Source: Bugula neritina (Eukaryota; Animalia; Bryozoa). Taken from it: a stretch of 64,000 bases of DNA. Below the pieces are notes generated by a model. The model had not been told where the DNA came from, did no database searches, and was given only the letters and a program-made list of their open reading frames with translations. The stretch spans positions 13,625,801 to 13,689,800 of the forward strand of contig OZ037767.1 of NCBI GenBank assembly GCA_964035545.1, written 5' to 3'. The position numbers and the translations under genes are program-made. Shown here one piece after another: positions 11,216 to 64,000 of the stretch. Numbering within the stretch: the stretch's first letter is position 1; each line of letters starts with the position of its first letter.

Positions 11216-12831
11216 TAAAATCGGAACAGGTTCTTCTCCTGTAAAAGTTTATTGAGTGTGCGGGGAAAGACACCATGTTTTTGAGAGACGCCACCACTTT
11301 AGTGTAACTTTAAAAACATTGCCGCTGCTATGAAAAGCAATGACATGATTGCACTCCCGCATTTTCAGGTTCAGATTATATTCACTAGGTATGTAGTATA
11401 CATGTTATTGAGATTGACTTGCATGGATGCTAAAAGTTGGCCTGTTTATTTTTGCATATTTTTGACTTTCATTCAGATCAGAAATGGCTATATCTATAGA
11501 TTTTAGTAACATTTCAACCAACTTTTTGGGCAAACAAACTAACAACAGTGATCAGGGTGCAATGGTCAGGTGGCTCATTGTGCCCGTGTGGCCAAATTGA
11601 AAATAAATGTGGCTCAAGGAAAATTTGTTTTAGAATTTGCTATTATACTCGTTAAGCAATGTAGAGACAAGCAATGGCAACAACACCAGTAAAAACTAGG
11701 CTTGTTGCCTTTGAATGTAAAAAGTTATAAAGCTTTAAAAATTACAAAAAGTAGGTAAAAGCAGTTTTTGACTCGCCTCTTCAACATGTATGCTCCTCTA
11801 GTGTTGAAAACACAATGGCTGAATAATTATGTCATTTCTTTTTTATTAAAGAAAAAATCACAACTCTATGTCAAGAAATTCTCTCACAATTTGACCGGCT
11901 TTCAGTACCCCTATGACTGTTGTGCCCCCCCCCCCCCCCCGTTACCCCTACCTGTGCGGTTATAGATTTGACTCTACAATCGTGTATCTAATCCGTTTTA
12001 TTAGCTGTTACTTTGTCTACAGTGTTAGTGTTCCATCAACTGCTCAGCAAAATTGATTCAAGAGATAATAACTAACAATGTATACTAACGGATCGCATCA
12101 CAATCTAGCTTGGCTTGTTAGTGAAAAGAAGACAACTACGAATTATAAGTTTGACGTGATTGATAGCCTAGGAACCCATACAGTTTTACACTTCTTGAAA
12201 GCCATCATTATAACCGACACAACTTTAAGCGTTTCTAAGTGTTTACGTTTTAAGTTTTGGAAATTGCCATCACGGTCACAATAGATGATTGCACATTAAC
12301 ATTGGCGTTGCTCTTGCCTGATTGCTAAAATGAGTGACTTTTTTGCTCGGCCTTACAATCATAATTATCATGTTTCATTTTAATATGTATTTCATTATCT
12401 ATATGTTACATTGGTTGGAAAGCTTTTTAACTTCTGCCCAAAACTAAAAGTTAAAGTAAAGATTTATATTATTATAAATATAATTAATATTATAATTAAA
12501 TTAATTTAAATAATAATTTAAATTATCATCATTACATTTACATTATGTATTTGCAAAGATCAAAATATTCAATTTCTTATTTATGTTCATACTGATATCG
12601 AATTTGACAGTCAACTTAAATAATCAATATAAATATTAATAATTAAATTTAATGTGAAACTGAAGTTCATATTCACTAATCACTATCATGTGTATATTAA
12701 TATTATTTATTCTTATTGATGCTTATATTAATATTATAAATATAATTATTAATTACTCCTAGTATTACTATTAGTATTGGTTGTATCACAGCTTTTAGCT
12801 GGTGTAACCTTCTACCATCGGCCTAGTTCCA

Positions 12832-15800
12832 CTAGGCTGGGATGGATAGAACTTTCCTCAAGATGTGAGCTGATCCTAGTAAGGCTGTCTGCTGAATCAG
12901 TGGGTATTTGTTTTCAGCTACTCCAAGTAGTGCCATCCAGTCTACAGTCATGTGTGAAGCTCCAAGGGCTCCAATTACAATGGGGATGACTTTTGTTGAT
13001 GTTTTCCAAAGGCGGGTTAACTCTAGTGCTAAATCCTGATATTTTCCTATCTTCTCTGATTTTTTTTCTTTTACTCTGTAATCACCAGGAACTGCGATAT
13101 CGATGATTGTTGTTTCAGCATTACGCTTGTCAACTACTACTATATCAGGCCTCCTAGCTTCGATGACTCTGTCGGTGTGTATGTTGAAGTCCCACAATAT
13201 TTTTACATTGTCATTCTCCAGTACTGATTCCGCTCGGTGGTCGTACCAATTTTTGCTTCTCTGAAATCCATGAAGTTCACACAACTCCCAGTGAATTATC
13301 GATGCCACATGATCGTGTCTTTTCTTATATTCTCCTTGTGCTAACTTCTCACATTCACTCAGTATATGCATCACAGTCTCGTCCCTTGCATTACACATCC
13401 GACACTTCTTGCTACCTTGTTCTTTCATTATAGCTACTTTATAATTTCTAGTAGGGAGTGCTTGATCTTGCGCAGCTAACAGCAGCCCTTCTATTTCCTT
13501 TTTCAGCCAACCAGATTTCAACCATTTCCATGAGCACGTTTTCATGTCCTCCACCTTTCTGATGTACTGACCATGTAGAGCCTTTTCTTTCCAGCCATCA
13601 GTTCTTTCTACCGATTTATCGTTCTTGATTTCTATTGCTGTTTTGTCTTTTAGGAAGGTATTCAGAGTGGTGTCTCCAGCAGTGCATGTCCTCTTTATGT
13701 AATCTGACATGCTGCATTCTTCAATCCTTACACATTCTTCAATTGACACCATCCCTCTTCCACCTTCCCTTTTGCTAACATACAGCCTGTCTACATCTGC
13801 TCTTGGATGGAGTGCACGGTTTATTATCACCAGCTTCCTTGCCTTTTTGTCCATTTCTTTTAGCTCATAAAACAGTTCAGTCAAGTATTCTAGCTGTGTA
13901 ATGCACTGCTGTTACTGCCCAAGTGTTTATTGCTTTGATCGTATTCCCTCCATTCAGTTTTGATTCCAGAACTTTTCTTATTCGCCTATAGTACTCCTTC
14001 CTGATTTTATCTTTCATTTCATCCATTTTTATTCTATTAGTCTCAAGAACTCCTAGATACTTATATGGCTCCTCATCCAGATCTTTGATTACCTGTTCAT
14101 CAGGCATAGTGATTCCTGTGTCTTCAATTTTCTTTCCTCTTTTCATAACCAGTGTGGCACATTTTTGTAACCCAAATTTCATTTCTACATCTCTTGTGAA
14201 GATCCTGGCAGCGTTCACCAAAGCTTCCAGTTCTGGCTTCGATTTCCCATATAGCTTCAAGTCATCCATATATAGAAGATGGTTTATTTTTCTGCCCTGT
14301 CGAAATTTGTATCCTTGAGCCGCTTCTCTCATTAGAATTGATAGAGGGATAAGAGCAGTCACAAAGAGGAGTGGAGATAGAGAGTTTCCTTGGAAAATTC
14401 CTCGCTTGATGTCTATTCCTCCAATCTTTTCTCCAAGGTACTCCAGTTGTGTTTTCCAAGACTTCATGCTTTTTCTTATCAACCTTATCACATTACTAGC
14501 CATTCCAGTTAGTTGCATTGTTTCTAAGATCCATGAGTGTGGTACCATGTCATATGCCTTTTGATAGTCTATCCAACACATTGCTAGATTGGTACTTCTC
14601 TTTTTCGAGTCACACATGATTGCCTTATCAAGCATGAGATGATCTTTAGCGCCCCTTGACTTTCTAATGCAGCCCTTTTGTTTTTCTCCAATGATATTTT
14701 GCTCTGAGAGATGATCATACAGGTTGTCAGCTAATATGCCTGTCAATGTTTTCCACATGAGGGGCAAGCAGGTAATTGGTCTATAGTTTCCTGACTGCTT
14801 CCCTTTAGCTGGATCCTCCATTATCAATGCTGTCTTGCCTAATGTCATCCATTCAGGGACATCCCCATTATCCAAGCACTTCTGCAGGTGATCAGCAATC
14901 AGCATATGCAGCTTTGTCAGGTGTTTAATCCAGTATCCTTGAACTCCATCTGGCCCTGGTGATTTCCAATTGGGCATTTTGCTTATCATCTTTTTCACAT
15001 CAGCCACTGTAATGCTTAAGTTCTCTTGTTTTTCTATATGCTCCAACTTGCTGCTTACTTTATTTAGCCATTCTGCATTGGTATTATGCTTTGTTGGCTG
15101 GCCCCAGATGTTTTGCCAGAACGCTTTTGAATCTTCCTTGTCAGGTGCCTCTTTATATGTACATTCATTCCCTTGTAATTCTTGATAGAAGCGCTTTTCA
15201 TTGTTTGTAAACATCCTGTTCTGGTTATATTGTTCAACTCGTTCTGTATATCTTTTTATTTTCTGACTTACAGCCCTCAGATTTTGCTTCAGTTCTTCAA
15301 TCACTACATCATATCCTTTCCTTCAAGCCTTCTTCTCAATGAATCATTGTAAGGTCTTCTTTTGCACTCGATTACTTTACTCAAGTCTGATCTAATTTCT
15401 CTTGATTTGTTCGTACTTTCCATGCTGGTACATTGTTAGGTTTTCTTCTTTCCTTATTGTTACACACTTGTTCTGTTACTATTATTGCACAAGCCATGAT
15501 GGTGTCATTGAGCTCAGTGATATTATCAATCTCAACACAGTCTAGCACTTCGTTAATCTGTCTTACTGCCTGAAGTAATTTGACCCTCTCAATGTGCCTA
15601 AGGGCGCTTAGTCTTGGTCGATCGTTAGTTAATCTGCTACGCTCAACTATAATTTTTTCAACTAGGACTTTTTCTGCCTCTGAACTAGGTACTCTTAAAA
15701 TTCTTATCGTTGGTTCATCTGGTATCTCATGCTGAACTATAACATCCTCTTCTATGTCTCGATCTAGCTCTTCATGATCTTCTTCACCAACTGTTGTGTC

Positions 15801-16163
15801 TTGTTCTTGCAAGGTTCCTTCTTCAATCTCATGGAGTTCTTCCTCTGTGAAATGCTTGTGTTTCTTTATAGTTCTTGCTTGATCTGCTAGTCTCTGTTCG
15901 CTGATGTCAAATCCTCCTCTTTCCTTCCAGAGTTCATACATTCTTTTTCTATAACCCCTCACTCTAGGTCTACGTTTGAAGTAGCATTCCATGACAGCTT
16001 TGTTGTCTTCTCTTGAGTATCTTCTTTTAGTTGTGCCAGTAACAGGTTGACGACCGTAGGTTGCCTGGTCCTCCACATACCCACTGCCGGACGAGACATG
16101 CCTAGCTTGGCTAGTCATCCCATTCACATCGTTAGCTTTATTCTTTCTATTGTAATTCATCAT
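12832..16163 (-). pseudogene. Retrotransposon ORF (Myb-like N-term, RT, CCHC, restriction-like endonuclease) broken into three frames
   Basis: N-term MECYF...GYRKRM...SEQRLADQ; RT motifs KSPGPDG, YRPITCL, WIDYQKAYD, GIFQGNSLSP, YMDD; CRMC..ETVMHILSEC; RHD; RRPDIVVVDK..IIDIAVP..KIGKY. Frame breaks at about 15300-15400 and about 13880. Confidence 0.92.
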
Positions 16164-16256
16164 ATTGAGTTTTTAGGAACTAATTTTAGGTCCTAATCCT
16201 AATAGGACCCAGCAAGGTAATGTGCAAAGCTTGCTGAAGGCTTTTTGCCAGAAAAA

Positions 16257-16341
16257 TGCCGCAGTCGGGAATCGTACCCGGAGCATAATCGGAACTCTGG
16301 ATTTTTGGAGTAATGTGTTCTACCAACTGAGCTATTCTGAC
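16257..16341 (-). other. tRNA-like head (A box/B box) at the 5' end of the R4 element
   Basis: TAGCTCAGTTGG (16323-16334) and GGTACGATTCC (16268-16278), followed by TTTTT (16252-16256). Confidence 0.75.
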
Positions 16342-16672
16342 ACATACTATTAGTATTTTTATTGCTATTAGTATTAGTATTACTATTAGTATTAGTATTA
16401 GTGTTATTATTGCTAAGGTACTACTATTATTATTGGTATTACTAGTAGTATTAGTAGTAATAGACTTACTCTTACTCTTAGTATTACTATTACTTTTTAC
16501 TGTTGGTGTTAGTAGTACTAATAGTTATACTAATATTGTTATTTACTAAGCCTAAGAGTAATGTGACTGCCTAATAAATGTAATAAAAGTTTAAGTTTAA
16601 AACTATTAATAGCTGTTTTGTCTCTTAAGTTATATATTTTGTAGTGCTCATTGAAACCTTCTTACAGTGATC

Positions 16673-50200: not shown

Positions 50201-53200
50201 TGGTGGTCATGTGGGCGCAGTTCGCTAAAAATAAATTCAATTATTGACTAGGAGATAGAGAAGTGAGTGGCAATAATATCACTTGACCTTTGAATGACCT
50301 TGTCAACTAAAGAAAACCCACCAGAAACCATCTTTTGGAAAAAGCTGCAGTTTATCATTAAGTTAAAATAGTGTACAGTTCAGTTACAAGGTGAAGAGCC
50401 AAAGCCTAAAGTCGTTTTTGTAACTCAATAAAAAATATTTAGTTTTTTCTTGAGTTTCATCAGGCATGCAAGGTAGAAGTTTACTAACCTTATTTCTTAT
50501 GGTAATTCTAATACGCTTATTCTGCGAGAGTAAAGCCCACAATCAATGACCGACTGAGTGAAATAACAGGGGGGGGGGGGGGGGGTACTCACCCACGCTG
50601 TGTACAAGAGACTCAATAGCCTGAGGAGTTAGAATGATGTAAGGCCTGCTGGACGGGTCGAACCACTCCTTCATAGCATCGTCCTTGAACTCTTCGCTCA
50701 GGTTCAGATAGAGGTCAAGCAGCGACTCCAGGTCAAGGTTTTCTCCCTCCGTGCAGATCAGCTCGCTGAGCACCTCTCCGAGGAACTCTTCGGTAGTCTG
50801 CGCTACGTTTCCATTCTGTGAGCAACAGCAGCAGCAAAATGTACCAAAGCAGTATAGTATATGTGTGTATAGTACAGTGTGTAAAGTAATACACAGTTTA
50901 GTATATGTGTGTATAGTATATGTGTGTAGAGTAATACACAGTATAGTATATGTGTATATAGTACAGTGTGTAGAGTAATACACAGTATAGTATATATGTG
51001 TATAGTACAGTGTGTAGAGTAATACACAGTATAGTATATGTGTATATAGTACAGTGTGTAAAGTAATACACAGTATAGTATATGTGTGTATAGTACAGTG
51101 TGTAGAGTAATACACAGTATAGTATAGTGTATATAGTACAGTGTGTAGAGTAATACACAGTATAGTATATGTGTGTATAGTACAGTGTGTAGAGTAATAC
51201 ACAGTATAGTATATGTGTATATAGTACAGTGTGTAGAGTAATACACAGTATAGTATATATGTATATAGTACAGTGTGTAAAGTAATACACAGTATAGTAT
51301 ATGTGTATATAGTAGAGTGTGTAGAGTAATACACAGTATAGTATATGTGTATATAGTACAGTGTGTAGAGTAATACACAGTATAGTATATGTGTATATAG
51401 TACAGTGTGTAGAGTAAAGATCTAGCACTATCAGGGGCTATATGAATACGACACACCCAGAAAGAAAGACATTAGTGCTGCTCGAATTTCACCAGCGTCA
51501 ATATTAAACCAGGAATTCATTCATAATTCCTATTCGCTACACTGAGATATGCTTCTAAAAATAGTTCACTACATCGTAGATCCAATAACGGGTAAGGGAA
51601 AGAAACTTCAAAAGTAGTGTTGACCTTTTGACCTCTACAATTCACTAAAAGGTGAAGTGAGAAAGACTGCATACAGTTCATACCTGAGTGTAGAGAGAAC
51701 TATCTATAGACGTGGTTCTACTCTGTGCAGTTGGGAAGGCGGGTGCCTCTCTGGAGAACCCGTCTGAGATAACAGAACTAGTTGGTGCTGAAGCCGACTC
51801 GTACGCCAAAGCCTTCTGTCTGTTGGAGAGCTCATGGGTCAGCCATAGTTGCAGCCTATGTCAACATATATACAACCACCTGACCAGTCTAGTCAGTGTC
51901 ACATACAGCTGTGAGTCATAAGGTACTAGAAAGACTTCACTGTGCCTGTCATACAACAACCACCTGACCAGTCTAGTCAGTGTCACATACAGCTGTGAGT
52001 CATAAGGTACTAGAAAGACTTCACTGTGCCTGTCATACAACAACCACTTGACCAGTCTAGTCAGTGTCACATACAGCTGTGAGTCATAAGGTACTAGAAA
52101 GACTTTACTGTGCCTGTCATATAGCAACCACCTGACCAGTCTAGTCAGTGTCACTTTCTAGCACCATAGTGGTTACAATGGCAGTAGAATAAATAATGAG
52201 CAACAACCATTGGAGGTGATAACCTGATGGGTTTTTGTAAAAAGTACATTTTCAGAAAAACGATGGAATACAACCGAATCTCTTAAGAGTAGAACTCTTC
52301 CACAGTAAAAAAATGTTAAATAATTTAAACAAACACCAAAAGCGGATATGATGTCATACCTGAGCTCGGCTGTGCCGTCGCAGCTGTAGTTTAGTCGATT
52401 GTCTATAGCAGAGGAAGCAGGGGAGACAACTGCATTAACCATTGGTGGAGCTGAGCTACTTTTAAGAGCTGAGACTGGGGGTCTAGGACCCAGCATTTCT
52501 TTCATGAAAGACATGTTCTCCGTGCTAAAAACATTGGTAATTATTATGCACCATCAACACAAAACATCCCAAATACATTTTGTTATACTTCAGTCGTGGA
52601 CATTCTTCAACCTAAATACCTGATACAATATATGAATTACATAAATTTCATTGCATAGATTTCCACTTCTTGTCTATCAATTAAAAATCCTTTGCGTTTC
52701 ATTCGCTTAAAGATTAACAGAATGTGGTAAGAAATGCCGGTTGTAGCAAATAATAGTAGTGAAGTTATCAAAAAACAGGAAATTTTGTTGAGCCAATAAA
52801 CTCAAAGATAGAACCAATAATACACTTTATAAAAAAGTCGTCTGTAACAACATTTGCTGAATGAATTAAGTCAGAAAATTATTTCACCATAGTAATAAAG
52901 ATATGTCCGCCAAACGACCTCGGAAGTTTCCAAGATTTAAATTAACCAGAGACTATTGCAAAGATCTGTAGCAGCTAAACTTATCAGTAGTTTTAAAAAT
53001 AGTACCAATATCTGCATCCAAAGACATAAAAAATATGTAGGGTGACACAGAGAGCAGGTGACACAGAGTGCAGGTGACACAGAGAGAAGGTGACACAGAG
53101 AGAAGGTGACACAGAGTGCAGGTGACACAGAGAGAAGGTGACACAGAGAGAAGGTGACGCAGAGAGAAGGTGACACAGAGAGAAGGTGACGCAGAGAGAA

Positions 53201-62200: not shown

Positions 62201-64000
62201 TGTATACTGTAGCTACACATGTATACGAACAGAGTGTATACTGTTGTTACACATGTATATGAACAGAGTGTATACTGTAGCTACACATGTATACGAACAG
62301 AGTGTATACTGTAGCTACACATGTATACGAACAGAGTGTATACTGTTGTTACACATGTATATGAACAGAGTGTATACTGTAGCTACACATGTATATGAGC
62401 ACAGAGTGTATACTGTAGCTACACATGTATATGAGCACAGAGTGTATACTGTAGTAACACATGTATATGAACAGAGTGTATACTGTAGTAACACATGTAT
62501 ATGAGCACAGAGTTACGGGACTATACGAAACGCATTCATTGACCTCTAAGGTCCCGCTGTGTATAAAGAATAAGTATAATACCTTGAGAGTCTGTGCATG
62601 TCCGGCGAGTCGAAACTCTTGTGGTAGAGCTCAGAGAGGGCCTTTACCTCTTCACATAACTGTAAACACAAACAGTCATATGACCAGCTACGGCAAGACA
62701 TACATAGACTTGTATTTAGTGAGGACTTTATTCCGTGAATATCGAAATACAAACTGCTCACACAGCTACTGAAATGAAGGAGCATTAAAGATACTTCAAT
62801 ATCAAAGCACTTTATGAAACACACGAAGGATGAATTCATTGACAAGCAGACAAAAAGAGATAAAATGTTGCGCACTTTTTGACAGACGGTGCTGATGTGG
62901 AGACACTTTACGCGACTGAGGAGGAGGAAGAAATGGTGAACCGCCCCGGAGCTGGGCGACTCTCGCAGAGTGGCTAGGCTGGTCAGCAGGACCTCCAGTA
63001 AGTGATTAGAGAACCTCTGCAGCTGCTCATCTCCCAGTCTACGGCTCAGCCTGTAACACACAGCAATAATGTAGTCTGTGTAAACTATACTGACAGACAC
63101 ACAGACAGACAGATATACAGACAGCCAGAGAGACACAGTGTAGTCTATATAAACTGTGCTGAGAGATATGATAGCCAGACAAACAGACAGACATACATGC
63201 AGGTATACACAGACAGATAAACACACATGTATAGAGACACGCAGACAGACGTCTAGACAGACACACAGACAGATACAGACATACAAACAGACATACAGAG
63301 ACAGGCATGCGTAATGACAGACAGACACGCAGACAGACACGCAGACAGACAGACATGAAGAGACAGACGGACACACAGAGACACACACACACACACGGCC
63401 ATACTTACTCTGTACAGACAGTCAGTAGTCTAGTAAAAGTGTGGCTGGAGGATCGAGTGCCTCTGATGATGCAATGTTCAACTAGGGCAGGCAGCTGTTG
63501 CTCTACGGCAGCAAGCACGCTGTTCTCGTACTTCCTGCAAGTAAGATAATTGGTCGATTAACAAACAGCAGTTTCTAACACCTGAGGGGGAGGGATACGT
63601 ATCAAACCAGGTTATTTATATGGCAAAGCGAAACTTTGTAACTGAAAATACAGTAGAGAAAATACACACAAGAGAGCACACTAAAAAAACAAAAAATAAA
63701 TGTAATATTATTAATCCAGCAAGCGGCTGCAAATATCTCTCAAGACTCTACACCACTTTAGCTAATTAGTATAGAGATCAATGGCGTTTACAAAGAACTC
63801 TATTTGGTTAGTTCGTATGCGTTTAGAAAACCTGGAAGAACAAACCTGGGAGAGACCTCATTGGTCTGAAGCATAGCAATCCAGCCTAAAACCCTCATAG
63901 CTGAGATCCGGTTCTGCTCTGTAGCCAGGAGGGAGCTTTCCAGAGGCGAGTCGGGGCTGTGTGTGAGACGTCCCGTATGCGCCACTTCTGTGAGGTTAGC
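26214..64000 (-). CDS. BIRC6: BIRC6/BRUCE/Apollon, 3' portion (many exons; 5' part incl. BIR domain lies beyond the right edge). UBC exons at about 28574-28790, 28322-28448, 28012-28123, 27473-27661; last exons about 26626-26913 and 26214-26387
   Basis: UBC: [60 protein letters not shown] (catalytic Cys codon 28083-28085), [15 protein letters not shown]. Also [54 protein letters not shown]. Confidence 0.95.
29921..30120 (+). mobile_element. tRNA-headed SINE, family A
   Basis: TAGTCTAGAGGTTAGAGC...GGTTCAAATCC...CATTGGTGATGTTAGGAAGAGCATCCAGTC. Confidence 0.75.
30865..31060. repeat. CATACTATACA-type simple repeat
   Basis: Visible tandem copies of ~15 bp. Confidence 0.9.
33357..33603. repeat. 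20-bp minisatellite (TGTCACATTATATAACAGCA) next to a BIRC6 acceptor
   Basis: About 12 tandem copies. Confidence 0.93.
34080..34530. repeat. (GTGTA)n pentanucleotide microsatellite
   Basis: Directly visible, about 450 bp. Confidence 0.97.
34765..34958. repeat. 16-bp minisatellite (AGACAAGCAGACGTGT)
   Basis: About 12 copies. Confidence 0.93.
35410..35601 (-). repeat. 29-bp minisatellite containing a BIRC6 splice donor
   Basis: Unit ACCAGAGTTGGGTATAGAAGGTGGGACAT on the plus strand; reads CTCTG|GTATGT on the minus strand. Confidence 0.95.
38526..38955. repeat. 21-bp minisatellite with GTCATGTGAC core (~21 copies)
   Basis: Unit AGTCATGTGACTATTAGAGAG. Confidence 0.95.
39610..39805. repeat. 13-bp minisatellite with AGGTAAGT core
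   Basis: 13 exact AGGTAAGT copies plus two variants. Confidence 0.95.
40249..40470 (-). repeat. ~28-bp minisatellite containing a BIRC6 acceptor
   Basis: On the minus strand units end ...ATACACTGTGTAG; the last copy is the acceptor at 40249-40251. Confidence 0.88.
42018..42160. mobile_element. Short fold-back MITE-like repeat (copy 1)
   Basis: Imperfect terminal inverted repeats; internal GAATTTGTGGTTG...TTCATTC.ATGCAACT...AAAAATTCATTC.CATAATG shared with 43667-43812. Confidence 0.6.
43334..45836 (+). CDS. NHL-repeat beta-propeller protein (~280 aa), nested antisense in a BIRC6 intron. Exons: 43334-43495, 43838-44008, 44386-44578, 44939-45052, 45362-45545, 45812-45836 (last exon tentative; otherwise the frame reads through to 45789)
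   Basis: Phase-compatible exons; NHL consensus [25 protein letters not shown] and [16 protein letters not shown]; upstream UTR donor GAG|GTAAGT near 43167; AATAAA near 45954. Confidence 0.8.
43667..43812. mobile_element. Short fold-back MITE-like repeat (copy 2)
   Basis: TGCATTTC...GAAATGCA inverted ends; similar to 42018-42160. Confidence 0.6.
49051..49170 (+). mobile_element. Degenerate SINE family A copy
   Basis: GTGGTCTGGTGGTTAGAG...GTCAGGGAGAGCATCCAATC. Confidence 0.5.
49170..49490. mobile_element. hAT MITE, same family as 25348-25692, left end missing
   Basis: Colinear similarity; ends GTTGGACATCCCTG. Confidence 0.7.
50850..51417. repeat. 44-bp minisatellite (~13 copies)
   Basis: Unit GTATAGTATATGTGTATATAGTACAGTGTGTAGAGTAATACACA. 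Confidence 0.95.
51873..52154. repeat. 84-bp tandem repeat (~3.3 copies) next to a BIRC6 acceptor
   Basis: CAC(C/T)TGACC recurs at 51877, 51961, 52045 and 52129. Confidence 0.95.
53040..53516. repeat. 16-bp minisatellite (GGTGACACAGAGAGAA, ~29 copies)
   Basis: Directly visible. Confidence 0.95.
59740..59840. repeat. Short repeat with palindromic CCTTATAAGG core
   Basis: About 5 degenerate copies. Confidence 0.8.
61905..62511. repeat. 34-35-bp minisatellite (ACACATGTATATGAACAGAGTGTATACTGTAGCT, ~18 copies)
   Basis: Directly visible; fills most of a BIRC6 intron. Confidence 0.95.
63090..63395. repeat. (CAGA)n/(CA)n low-complexity intron tract
   Basis: Directly visible. Confidence 0.85.

Follow-up and report, generated by a model that had tools for sequence, protein, structure and literature searches.

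A non-LTR retrotransposon family of Bugula neritina with a decayed tRNA-gene-type unit as its 5' end

Anatomy and target of the element

The window, a stretch of 64,000 nt of Bugula neritina contig OZ037767.1, carries on its minus strand a non-LTR retrotransposon of 3,565 nt (12779-16343), the sequence of which encodes a reverse transcriptase (RT), a CCHC motif and a restriction-like endonuclease (RLE). Read on the minus strand, as are all features below, its 5' terminus is the G at 16343 (GTGTCAGAATAGCTCAG...) and its 3' terminus lies at 12779 (...GCTGTGATACAACC). The coordinates and anatomy given in an initial annotation of the locus were borne out. The first 87 nt (16257-16343) form a tRNA-gene-derived head, with a common start in six insertions that have differing flanks. 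A run of five T (T5; 16252-16256, element +88 to +92) comes right after a discriminator-like A, in the layout of the real tRNA-gene terminators of this genome, and the remaining 5' UTR (16164-16251, element +93 to +180) holds three small hairpins (folding z = -1.9).

The ORF of the window copy is split across three frames, and this copy is therefore dead, as is every family copy examined. An N-terminal part of 260 aa without a Pfam domain (15381-16163) is followed in a different frame by the RT part (13877-15304), which is of the non-LTR type, matches the Pfam domain RVT_1 (4.5e-25) and has R2 proteins as its closest solved relatives (E about 1e-21). The C-terminal part, in the third frame (12832-13884), contains C-x2-C-x8-H-x4-C and then RPDIVVVD..IIDIAV..K, which aligned to the CCHC zinc knuckle and RLE region of solved R2 proteins (E = 2e-6), with a weak match to zf-RVT; an APE endonuclease domain was not found in the element by Pfam search. 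At the 3' end (12779-12838), two small hairpins (CCTAG..CTAGG and CAGC..GCTG), which show compensatory changes in relatives from other assemblies, precede TGATACAACC.

The element is bracketed by a 13-nt direct repeat, AATACTAATAGTA, with the upstream copy (a putative target-site duplication) at 16357-16345 and the downstream copy at 12778-12766. The repeat adjoins the 3' end exactly, and one extra T (16344) separates it from element base 1; in other copies, the first G is immediately preceded by ...AAT. The upstream copy lies at the inner margin of a degenerate (TAN)n microsatellite of 150 bp (16345-16494). The same 13-mer also recurs within the flanking microsatellite, where ~9% of junction positions would yield an equally long anchored match, so that the repeat, initially read as a 13-bp target-site duplication and indeed present at both ends, is weak evidence by itself. 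The boundaries of the element are really fixed by the other genomic copies rather than by the 13-nt repeat.

In these other copies (AAT)n directly follows the element 3' end, and (AAT)n flanks both sides of four genomic copies and of relatives from five other assemblies; the degenerate (TAN)n array is a non-canonical target. A Dong-type (TAA)n target, as had been proposed, was confirmed in the present genome and in relatives from four other assemblies. These data show a young, low-copy family of RLE non-LTR retrotransposons whose insertion sites, like those of Dong, are (TAA)n/(AAT)n microsatellites; the window copy is a dead member.

Dong (Bombyx mori) and R4 (Ascaris) share with this family a domain order of RT, CCHC knuckle and PD-(D/E)XK endonuclease, an apparently single long ORF, and a structured 3' end with the target repeat after it; the likeness to Dong, which also targets (TAA)n microsatellites, is one of domain layout and target. 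The difference lies at the 5' end. Dong and R4 self-cleave exactly at their own 5' ends via an HDV-like ribozyme (PMC3774820), consistent with the role as 5'-end definer that the initial annotation had given to such ribozymes, whereas the present family starts with a tRNA-gene-derived unit. No HDV-type ribozyme was detected in the family or its relatives by Rfam at E≤10, and a descriptor search (with no positive control) was also empty; since none was detected, the family may have a different 5'-end device.

The head across copies and sub-lineages

All copies that reach the 5' end in the 216-Mb genome (5/5) start at the same G and have unrelated, (AAT)n flanks, and one further copy from an independent JGI assembly has the identical G1 start and a different flank. 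The junction between head and body (T5 then CTGGC) is constant in eight sequences from three sub-lineages, and two older sub-lineages (~70-80% identical over the UTR) retain head remnants together with the same junction. Neither solo heads nor a SINE carrying the head were found in the genome. At least 15 further copies are 5'-truncated, with 3' ends that are 93-99% identical, which is the normal LINE pattern. One internally deleted copy of 1.33 kb consists of head plus tail (L039), and the genome contains no short derivative family of the element.

These comparisons show that the head is part of the element and is reproduced with each round of retrotransposition, which places the start of the template RNA at head base 1 or no more than 1-2 nt from it. 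A precise RNA start is also supported by the window copy, which lies in a non-canonical target and in which no donor (AAT)n separates the repeat from G1. The claim that the tRNA-like module moves with the element, rather than being its target or an adjacent SINE, stands on the six insertions, the constant junction and the lack of solo heads, and insertions with different flanks do share the tRNA-like 5' start (5/5 genomic copies and the JGI copy).

We also considered a one-off artefact, in which the head would be a neighboring SINE or tRNA pseudogene, the element would have targeted a tRNA gene, or a template switch would have produced a chimera in the window copy only. Both tRNA/LINE chimeras and tRNA-gene-specific RLE elements exist (bioRxiv 10.1101/2025.02.02.635956; PMC4640811), but six independent insertions begin at the same head base, share the junction and have differing flanks with (AAT)n on either side, and solo heads are absent from the genome. 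An artefact of this kind is refuted, and we give it a negligible probability.

tRNA-gene motifs and fold of the head

By canonical tRNA numbering the tRNA-like part begins at element base 3, which matches the start 3 nt inside the repeat that was first reported. Box A (TAGCTCAGTTGG; 16323-16334, element +10 to +21) is a perfect match. A box-B-like motif (GGTACGATTCC; 16268-16278, element +66 to +76) agrees with GGTTCGATTCC at 10 of 11 positions, has A in place of the conserved T55, and lies within a 4-bp T-arm-like hairpin (stem CGGG/CCCG, 7-nt loop). With 44 nt between the boxes and T5 at +88, the head has the layout of a type-2 Pol III gene. The GG of the D loop is kept, and five of the seven acceptor-stem positions are paired, rising to six of seven in the most diverged copy, where all three substitutions keep or gain pairing.

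An 18-mer that contains box A (TAGCTCAGTTGGTAGARC) occurs 21 times in the genome, 16 times in real tRNA genes and otherwise only in the five heads, while its reversed control has 0 genomic occurrences; the tRNA origin of the head is therefore not a matter of chance. Overall, the head is ~61% identical to real tRNA genes of the same genome, and T5 matches the native tRNA-gene terminators (T4-T8) in position and length. A 10-nt insertion in the head is absent from the older sub-lineages, and the ancestral head was accordingly ~77 nt long. These features show that the family opens with 92 nt of a tRNA-gene-type unit that is decayed yet complete: a leader of 2 nt (or an extended acceptor), box A, a box-B-like T arm, a discriminator-like A and T5.

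The tRNA fold itself is gone. ARAGORN found no tRNA in the head with its default settings or at a 90% threshold, and lowering the threshold to 80% brought up only noise; the Rfam model for tRNA (RF00005) gave nothing at E≤10 on a 321-nt stretch. The folding energy of the head is no better than that of shuffles (z = 0.1), and its minimum-energy fold is not a cloverleaf. Two acceptor mismatches are adjacent, 4 rather than 2 nt precede the D stem, and the anticodon stem is absent. The head lacks a functional tRNA fold; like the heads of SINEs, it has kept motifs but lost the fold, and the term ‘tRNA-like’ is valid only at the level of gene motifs. Of the module as initially described, box A, the box-B-like motif, the CGGG/CCCG T arm and 5/7 of the acceptor pairs hold, but neither ARAGORN nor Rfam recognizes a tRNA.

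These results weaken the suggestion that the head is an RNase P mimic. Under it, the element would be co-transcribed from upstream host promoters and RNase P would cut at the base of the acceptor-like helix, giving an exact 5' end in place of the HDV-like ribozyme. The ribozyme of Dong and R4 does cut at the 5' end (PMC3774820) and none is detectable in the present family; the RNA 5' end coincides with base 1 of the 7-position helix, the T arm and D-loop GG are kept, and the 5' UTR RNA of L1Tc takes a tRNA-like shape and is cut by RNase P in vitro (PMC3383444). However, the empty tRNA searches, the structural defects listed above and the T55 to A change all count against a mimic, and 5/7 pairing has a chance expectation of about 7%. 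RNase Z, moreover, would process a good mimic 3' of the discriminator base and so sever the head from the body, yet all full-length copies retain the head. We consider RNase P release improbable.

A Pol III promoter, the other role that had been put forward, fits the motifs and the +1 position, but T5 is laid out as a native terminator and the body contains three further T4 runs. If T5 were leaky, the head might drive Pol III over the entire 3.5-kb element, a reading with which the boxes, the +1 position and the A-rich sense strand are consistent, T5 being the only sense-strand run of ≥5 T. This scarcity of T runs is, however, what base composition leads one to expect (4.0 T4 and 0.7 T5), native tRNA genes here terminate at T4-T8, and Pol III is viewed in the field as poorly processive, with badly translated transcripts (e.g., PMC10886601). 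Transcription of the whole element in this way is very improbable.

Origin and role of the head

The head diverges as fast as the remaining UTR (77 vs. 75% and 70 vs. 70%) and thus shows no sign of extra purifying selection. A sister lineage from another organism, which has 74% nucleotide identity in the ORF and agrees with the family in target and 3' end, possesses a 5' UTR that cannot be aligned with that of the present family (folding z = -0.6). The first 7 nt, GYGYCAG, are common to both, their UTRs being otherwise unrelated, a pattern more readily explained by an older 5'-terminal signal than by a foreign RNA 5' end captured whole. The second UTR hairpin carries a G-C to C-G swap between sub-lineages.

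LINE 5' UTRs are often replaced, as in L1 evolution, and the head could be an inert fossil of a single capture (by template switch, 5' transduction, or retrocopying of a SINE or tRNA into the master 5' UTR), with the start set by GYGYCAG, the downstream hairpins or an internal Pol II promoter. The shared rate of change, the decayed cloverleaf, the hairpin swap, and a sister lineage that has GYGYCAG at +1 without a recognizable tRNA module are all in keeping with such a passenger. Yet the head makes up the first 92 nt, and any internal promoter that sets +1 must include it or act across it; box A is still perfect, the spacing of +1 is as expected of a type-2 Pol III start, and the head has been retained through sub-lineages up to about 25-30% diverged. 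We regard an inert head as possible but doubtful.

The explanation that we tentatively favor, at somewhat less than an even chance, is that the head is a captured Pol III transcription unit that has become a heritable 5' end and serves as a start-site or promoter module at the DNA level. A tRNA-gene origin is supported by the box A 18-mer, otherwise confined to tRNA genes, and by T5, placed like native terminators; the unalignable UTR of the sister lineage, which has the same target and 3' end, points to lineage-specific acquisition. The captured RNA may have been a primary transcript of Pol III, either a pre-tRNA or a SINE RNA of tRNA type with an oligo-U tail, which an ancestral master took up after the split from the sister lineage of other organisms. 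In U6/L1 chimeras, the joining of a sense Pol III RNA to a LINE by a T run is a known product of template switching. The same is known for tRNA/L1 fusions (bioRxiv 10.1101/2025.02.02.635956), and non-autonomous LTR elements have recruited tRNA-derived Pol III promoters (PMC10886601).

As a start-site module, the head would presently work on DNA like a SINE head, with box A/box B recruiting TFIIIC/TFIIIB and placing transcription initiation 9 nt upstream of box A. Occasional read-through, or Pol II initiation at that site, could then supply the productive full-length transcripts; the head itself probably does not support efficient transcription of all 3.5 kb by Pol III. T5 and the three T4 sense runs should stop Pol III, which speaks against the favored view, as do the poor performance of Pol III transcripts as mRNAs, the A for T55 in the box-B-like motif, the lack of extra constraint on the head and the fact that all examined copies are dead. 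The broader proposal, that an R4/Dong-type autonomous LINE swapped the HDV-like ribozyme of its relatives for a tRNA-gene-derived module that actively defines the 5' end, whether by TFIIIC/Pol III-type start selection or by RNase P cleavage, is conceivable, although we think it rather unlikely.

Several known systems resemble the family in part. In tRNA-derived SINEs, too, the 5' end is a tRNA-derived head that has boxes A and B and a decayed cloverleaf; these SINEs start ~10 nt upstream of box A and end in a LINE 3' end, but they are short (under about 600 bp), non-coding and non-autonomous, and lack a terminator right after the head, whereas the present element is 3.56 kb long with RT and endonuclease coding sequence. 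U6/L1 and tRNA/L1 chimeras likewise place a sense Pol III RNA 5' of a LINE sequence within one insertion, the two being joined through a T run; they are, however, one-off dead insertions with variable junctions and a 5'-truncated L1, and the tRNA parts of tRNA/L1 chimeras are mostly halves and antisense (bioRxiv 10.1101/2025.02.02.635956). The present family differs from the U6/L1 type in its fixed junction, its full-length LINE, and a chimera that is itself a propagating master. TRIMp3 (Helenus, Ajax and Cassandra; LTR elements with tRNA- or 5S-derived Pol III promoters) are non-SINE retroelements that also use a small-RNA-gene promoter module as their transcription start, and their autonomous partners have been argued to need Pol II (PMC10886601); unlike the coding LINE described here, they are short and non-autonomous. 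In L1Tc of Trypanosoma cruzi, the first ~77 nt (Pr77/L1TcRz) combine an internal promoter with a 5'-end-defining RNA, but L1Tc has no tRNA-gene sequence similarity and uses an HDV-like ribozyme, while the present head resembles a tRNA gene (boxes, terminator) and has no predicted tRNA-like fold.

By the usual account, heads derived from tRNAs are a property of SINEs, to which some miniature LTR elements have recently been added, whereas the transcription of coding LINEs falls to Pol II. This division between SINEs and LINEs is made less sharp by the present family, in which a coding LINE has a complete tRNA-gene-type unit as a stably inherited 5' end. The family is a concrete, testable case of the long-postulated intermediate in SINE birth, in which a tRNA-type RNA is fused to a LINE and internal deletion follows, and it resembles a SINE precursor, with a 1.33-kb head-plus-tail deletion derivative already in the genome. 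Should the head be inert, the family would be a clean case of a template-switch chimera turned master element. Should it be functional, it would represent a third way to fix a LINE 5' end, besides internal Pol II promoters and ribozymes; and if the reading as an active module is true, the family would be without precedent among coding LINEs in having a working SINE-type head, and would represent a living intermediate on the way to tRNA-derived SINEs.

Anatomy, boundaries and genomic copies of the element

The element lies on the minus strand, running for 3,565 nt from a G at 16343 (G1) to ...GCTGTGATACAACC at 12779. Its 180-nt 5' UTR is followed, on the same strand, by an N-terminal coding part of 260 aa in which Pfam finds no domain, a reverse transcriptase (RT) part (Pfam RVT_1, 4.5e-25) and a C-terminal part that carries a C-x2-C-x8-H-x4-C knuckle together with an RPDIVVVD..IIDIAV..K motif. 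R2 proteins give the best alignment for the RT (E about 1e-21); in solved R2 proteins, the C-terminal part aligns to the region of the zinc knuckle and the restriction-like endonuclease (E = 2e-6). Since the three coding parts of the window copy occupy three different frames, and none of five long genomic copies has an intact ORF, the window copy and its siblings are dead. The only other ORFs >200 aa within the window are at 50543-51456 (-) and 62546-63394 (-).

A degenerate (TAN)n microsatellite of 150 bp (16345-16494) lies upstream of the element, and a 13-nt direct repeat, AATACTAATAGTA (16357-16345 and 12778-12766), abuts the 3' end exactly, with one extra T at the 5' end. This repeat is real, yet it is weak proof of a target-site duplication, because the same 13-mer is present again 36 nt further upstream in the microsatellite, a 19-nt match to the downstream flank also occurs there, and an anchored match of ≥13 nt would be found at about 9% of the possible junction positions in this microsatellite. 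The element boundaries are set far better by the other copies. In the window copy the target is not pure (AAT)n and no donor (AAT)n separates G1 from the repeat, which places the start of the template RNA at G1 or no more than 1-2 nt before it.

A whole-genome search with the first 411 nt of the element recovered four further 5'-complete copies, 88-95% identical (C2:24.74 Mb, C3:17.17 Mb, C5:10.09 Mb and C2:0.38 Mb), and a sixth such copy, again with a different flank, is present on a contig of an independent JGI assembly (L068). All 5'-complete copies share the first base G, in the context GTGTCAG or, in the most diverged copy, GCGTCGG; their flanks are unrelated and, outside the window, end in (AAT)n. 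Copies reaching the 3' end terminate in ...GATACAAYC followed by (AAT)n. The tRNA-gene-derived module that forms the first 87 nt (the head) is present in every copy that reaches the 5' end. Used alone as a query, it returns exactly the five genomic copies, with no solo heads and no SINE built on the head in the 216-Mb genome. These results support the head as part of the element and bear out the initial annotation's claim that the tRNA-like module moved with it: no headless full-length copy was found, and it is exceedingly improbable that the head is a one-off artefact. An adjacent SINE, a tRNA-gene target and segmental duplication are excluded, as the flanks differ beyond (AAT)n and both ends are exact in every copy.

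In two single older relatives in the same genome (L040 and L041), which show about 70-80% identity over the UTR, the 5' truncation falls inside the head; what remains of it is the 3' part with the T run, joined to the body at the same junction. Since neither carries the 10-nt insertion, the ancestral head would have been about 77 nt long. A search with the last 402 nt returned at least 15 further copies at 93-99% identity, which makes the sub-family a young one; as is typical of LINEs, 5' truncation affects most copies. One copy (L039; G000:C2:24740500-24745200, minus strand) joins the head and first 361 nt to the last 966 nt, and is an (AAT)n-flanked, SINE-like head-plus-tail deletion derivative of 1.33 kb. 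At G000:C2:15381733-15382409, two partial 3' ends in tandem (the last 115 nt; 99-100% identical) come after a complete element 3' end, forming a small array of tails.

The genome also contains an abundant sister family (L008-L030; 83-88% identical) that begins exactly at the ORF ATG after (AAT)n, with no 5' UTR, no head and about 485 bp of the RT missing {e.g., at C3:14.8-15.8 Mb, C7:12.1-14.9 Mb, C5:14.6-17.7 Mb, C6:0.5-6.5 Mb, C8:1.2-6.1 Mb and C1:32.9-34.9 Mb}. The upstream flank is identical for at least 300 bp in 22 of the 23 loci read, so this family appears to have been amplified within a larger repeat unit that clusters in a few chromosome regions; the remaining locus (L024) has a different upstream flank and the same start.

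tRNA-gene motifs and folding of the head

The head (+1 to +87) is readable as a decayed tRNA gene. A seven-position terminal helix starts at +1 (GTGTCAG with CTGCGGC, paired at 5 of 7 positions), a perfect box A (TAGCTCAGTTGG) is at +10, and a D-arm-like hairpin has one C·A mismatch. GGTACGATTCC, carried at +66 by a 4-bp T-arm-like hairpin, agrees with the box B consensus in 10 of 11 positions and has an A at the conserved T55; the two boxes are 44 nt apart. The head has no anticodon stem and ends in a discriminator-like A followed by T5 (+88 to +92). In real tRNA genes of this genome a T4-T8 run occurs within 0-3 nt after the 3' end, and the T5 of the head is therefore laid out as a native terminator.

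That the head derives from a tRNA gene or a tRNA-type SINE is, from its sequence, not in doubt, because the 18-mer TAGCTCAGTTGGTAGARC is confined to real tRNA genes and heads: its 21 occurrences in the 216-Mb genome comprise 16 real tRNA genes (Tyr with intron, Thr and Ala) and five heads, with none for the reversed control. The best identities to tRNA genes are about 61%, and no single parent can be assigned, since the best-matching Tyr, Ala and Thr genes share the D arm. The genome holds a tRNA-Tyr(GTA) array of at least seven genes with 13-nt introns, 4-18 kb apart (G000:C1:3.27-3.35 Mb; L045-L051), and further Tyr genes with longer introns are among L056-L058, L060, L061 and L064; one of these Tyr-type copies (L060) has GGA at the anticodon position.

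In the structural sense the head is no tRNA; the initial description of it as tRNA-like is borne out only for its gene motifs. For the window and nine related loci, ARAGORN gave no tRNA at the 100% or 90% thresholds; at 80% and 70% its matches were noise on both strands. Rfam cmscan (E≤10), run over 5 kb, a 321-nt stretch and the relatives, returned no tRNA, no HDV-type ribozyme and no other credible match. The minimum-energy fold of the head is not a cloverleaf and equals that of shuffles (z = 0.1), folding z-scores of the sister-lineage 5' ends (L066 and L090, from other organisms) are also near 0, and a tRNA-like or other stable fold is thus thermodynamically unsupported for either. Compensatory changes in eight UTR sequences, too few and too similar for a covariation analysis, are only anecdotal. 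Our own HDV-like ribozyme descriptor, which had no positive control, found no match in the element family or the sister lineage, and its matches in L041 and L044 were at or near shuffle background; with Rfam and this descriptor, the non-detection of an HDV-like ribozyme in these two groups is absence of evidence only.

The proposal that the head is a tRNA mimic at which RNase P releases the element RNA in place of a ribozyme is weakened, and we regard it as improbable. It has an analogy in Dong and R4 proper, in which an HDV-like ribozyme cuts co-transcripts exactly at the element 5' end (PMC3774820). The 5' end of our element does coincide with the base of the terminal helix, which in the most diverged copy has 6 of its 7 positions paired, owing to three substitutions that favour pairing. 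However, there is no detectable cloverleaf, the terminal helix has two adjacent mismatches, pairing at 5 of 7 positions is expected by chance about 7% of the time, and RNase Z would act on a good mimic as well, removing the head from the template.

Relatives in other organisms

The RT has >1,500 homologues, and the named ones are metazoan (shrimp, sea urchins and a sponge). Relatives on contigs of four other assemblies, at 60-74% nucleotide identity, share the (AAT)n target and the 3' architecture: two small hairpins with compensatory changes (CCTAG/CTAGG vs TCTAG/CTAGA; CAGC/GCTG vs CGAC/GTCG), then TGAYNNAACC and (AAT)n, common to five assemblies (window 12779-12838 (-); L066:4520-4575; L067:2930-2990; L042:2960-3030). 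This two-hairpin 3' end is probably the structure recognized by the RT.

Two of these relatives reach the 5' end, those of the sister lineage (L066 and L090); the contigs of several other ORF homologues (L042, L043 and L067) are 5'-truncated. Homology between the element UTR and the sister-lineage UTRs is rejected, as their global alignment is no better than shuffles (z = -0.6), and the latter contain no recognizable tRNA module. The clear tRNA-type head is therefore confined to the lineage of this genome. Both sister-lineage UTRs open with the same heptamer (GTGCCAG or GCGCCAG), and only these first 7 nt agree; the shared GYGYCAG (L066:958-964; L090:65-71; window 16337-16343 (-)) may be an older, conserved 5'-terminal signal. 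The sister-lineage UTRs also hold 2-3 copies of a TAAGGGAG..AACCCTGACAGAAAA motif.

The N-terminal ORF had no match in JGI metagenomes, and a scan for the head in other organisms with the 20-mer TAGCTCAGTTGGTAGAACAC recovered >120 unrelated tRNA-like repeats, none with this head. A tRNA-like repeat that shares TAGCTCAGTTGGTAGAACAC and is very abundant in other, host-associated metagenomes (L091-L210; JGI/ENA contigs, many of them Ga01263xx, OMLO/OFH/OFE) combines an intact B box and a T run with a conserved downstream body (..CAGGCTTTAATTTCACAACTGC..), and is apparently a tRNA-derived SINE family unrelated to the head.

The head could also be an inert passenger. The head and the remainder of the UTR diverge at the same pace (77 vs 75% and 70 vs 70%), the sister lineage manages without a recognizable head, and GYGYCAG is common to both lineages. 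We consider this reading possible, if rather unlikely.

Origin, role and significance of the head

A sense-oriented Pol III-type unit, which starts ~9 nt upstream of box A and ends at the T run, is joined directly to a LINE. Template switching onto a Pol III primary transcript would yield such an arrangement, as in U6/L1 chimeras; 5' transduction of an upstream tRNA-type gene could give the same product. tRNA/L1 chimeras exist, mostly as antisense halves (bioRxiv 10.1101/2025.02.02.635956), but U6/L1 and tRNA/L1 chimeras are one-off insertions, whereas the chimera described here became a master.

The head is a putative DNA-level start-site or promoter module resembling a SINE head, a reading that includes a weaker, Pol II-positioning form and to which we give somewhat less than an even chance. 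Its perfect box A, the 44-nt box spacing and a +1 at the position that a type-2 promoter would specify speak for this part of the initial proposal of a Pol III promoter. Transcription of the whole element by Pol III is very improbable, given the T5, three further T4 runs in the element and the fact that Pol III transcripts are poorly translated. As a Pol III signature, the low number of T runs is uninformative either way, because observed counts equal the expectation from the A-rich composition.

The element resembles Dong in domain order and target, and its head is formally like that of a SINE, although the element itself (3.56 kb, coding) falls outside the SINE definition. Autonomous elements are usually thought to use Pol II (PMC10886601); the closest known case in which a small-RNA-gene promoter was recruited by a non-SINE retroelement is that of the TRIMp3 elements (PMC10886601). 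Among LINEs, a tRNA-like 5' UTR has its nearest precedent in L1Tc: RNase P cuts the L1Tc 5' UTR RNA in vitro, and the tRNA resemblance is structural, without gene-level similarity (PMC3383444). Full-text literature searches turned up no description of an RLE LINE whose 5' end is tRNA-derived.

With the C2 copy (L039) already a head-plus-tail derivative, it is plausible that this family is a living intermediate of SINE genesis. For the R4 clade, it also provides a testable counterpart to 5' ends that are set by a ribozyme.
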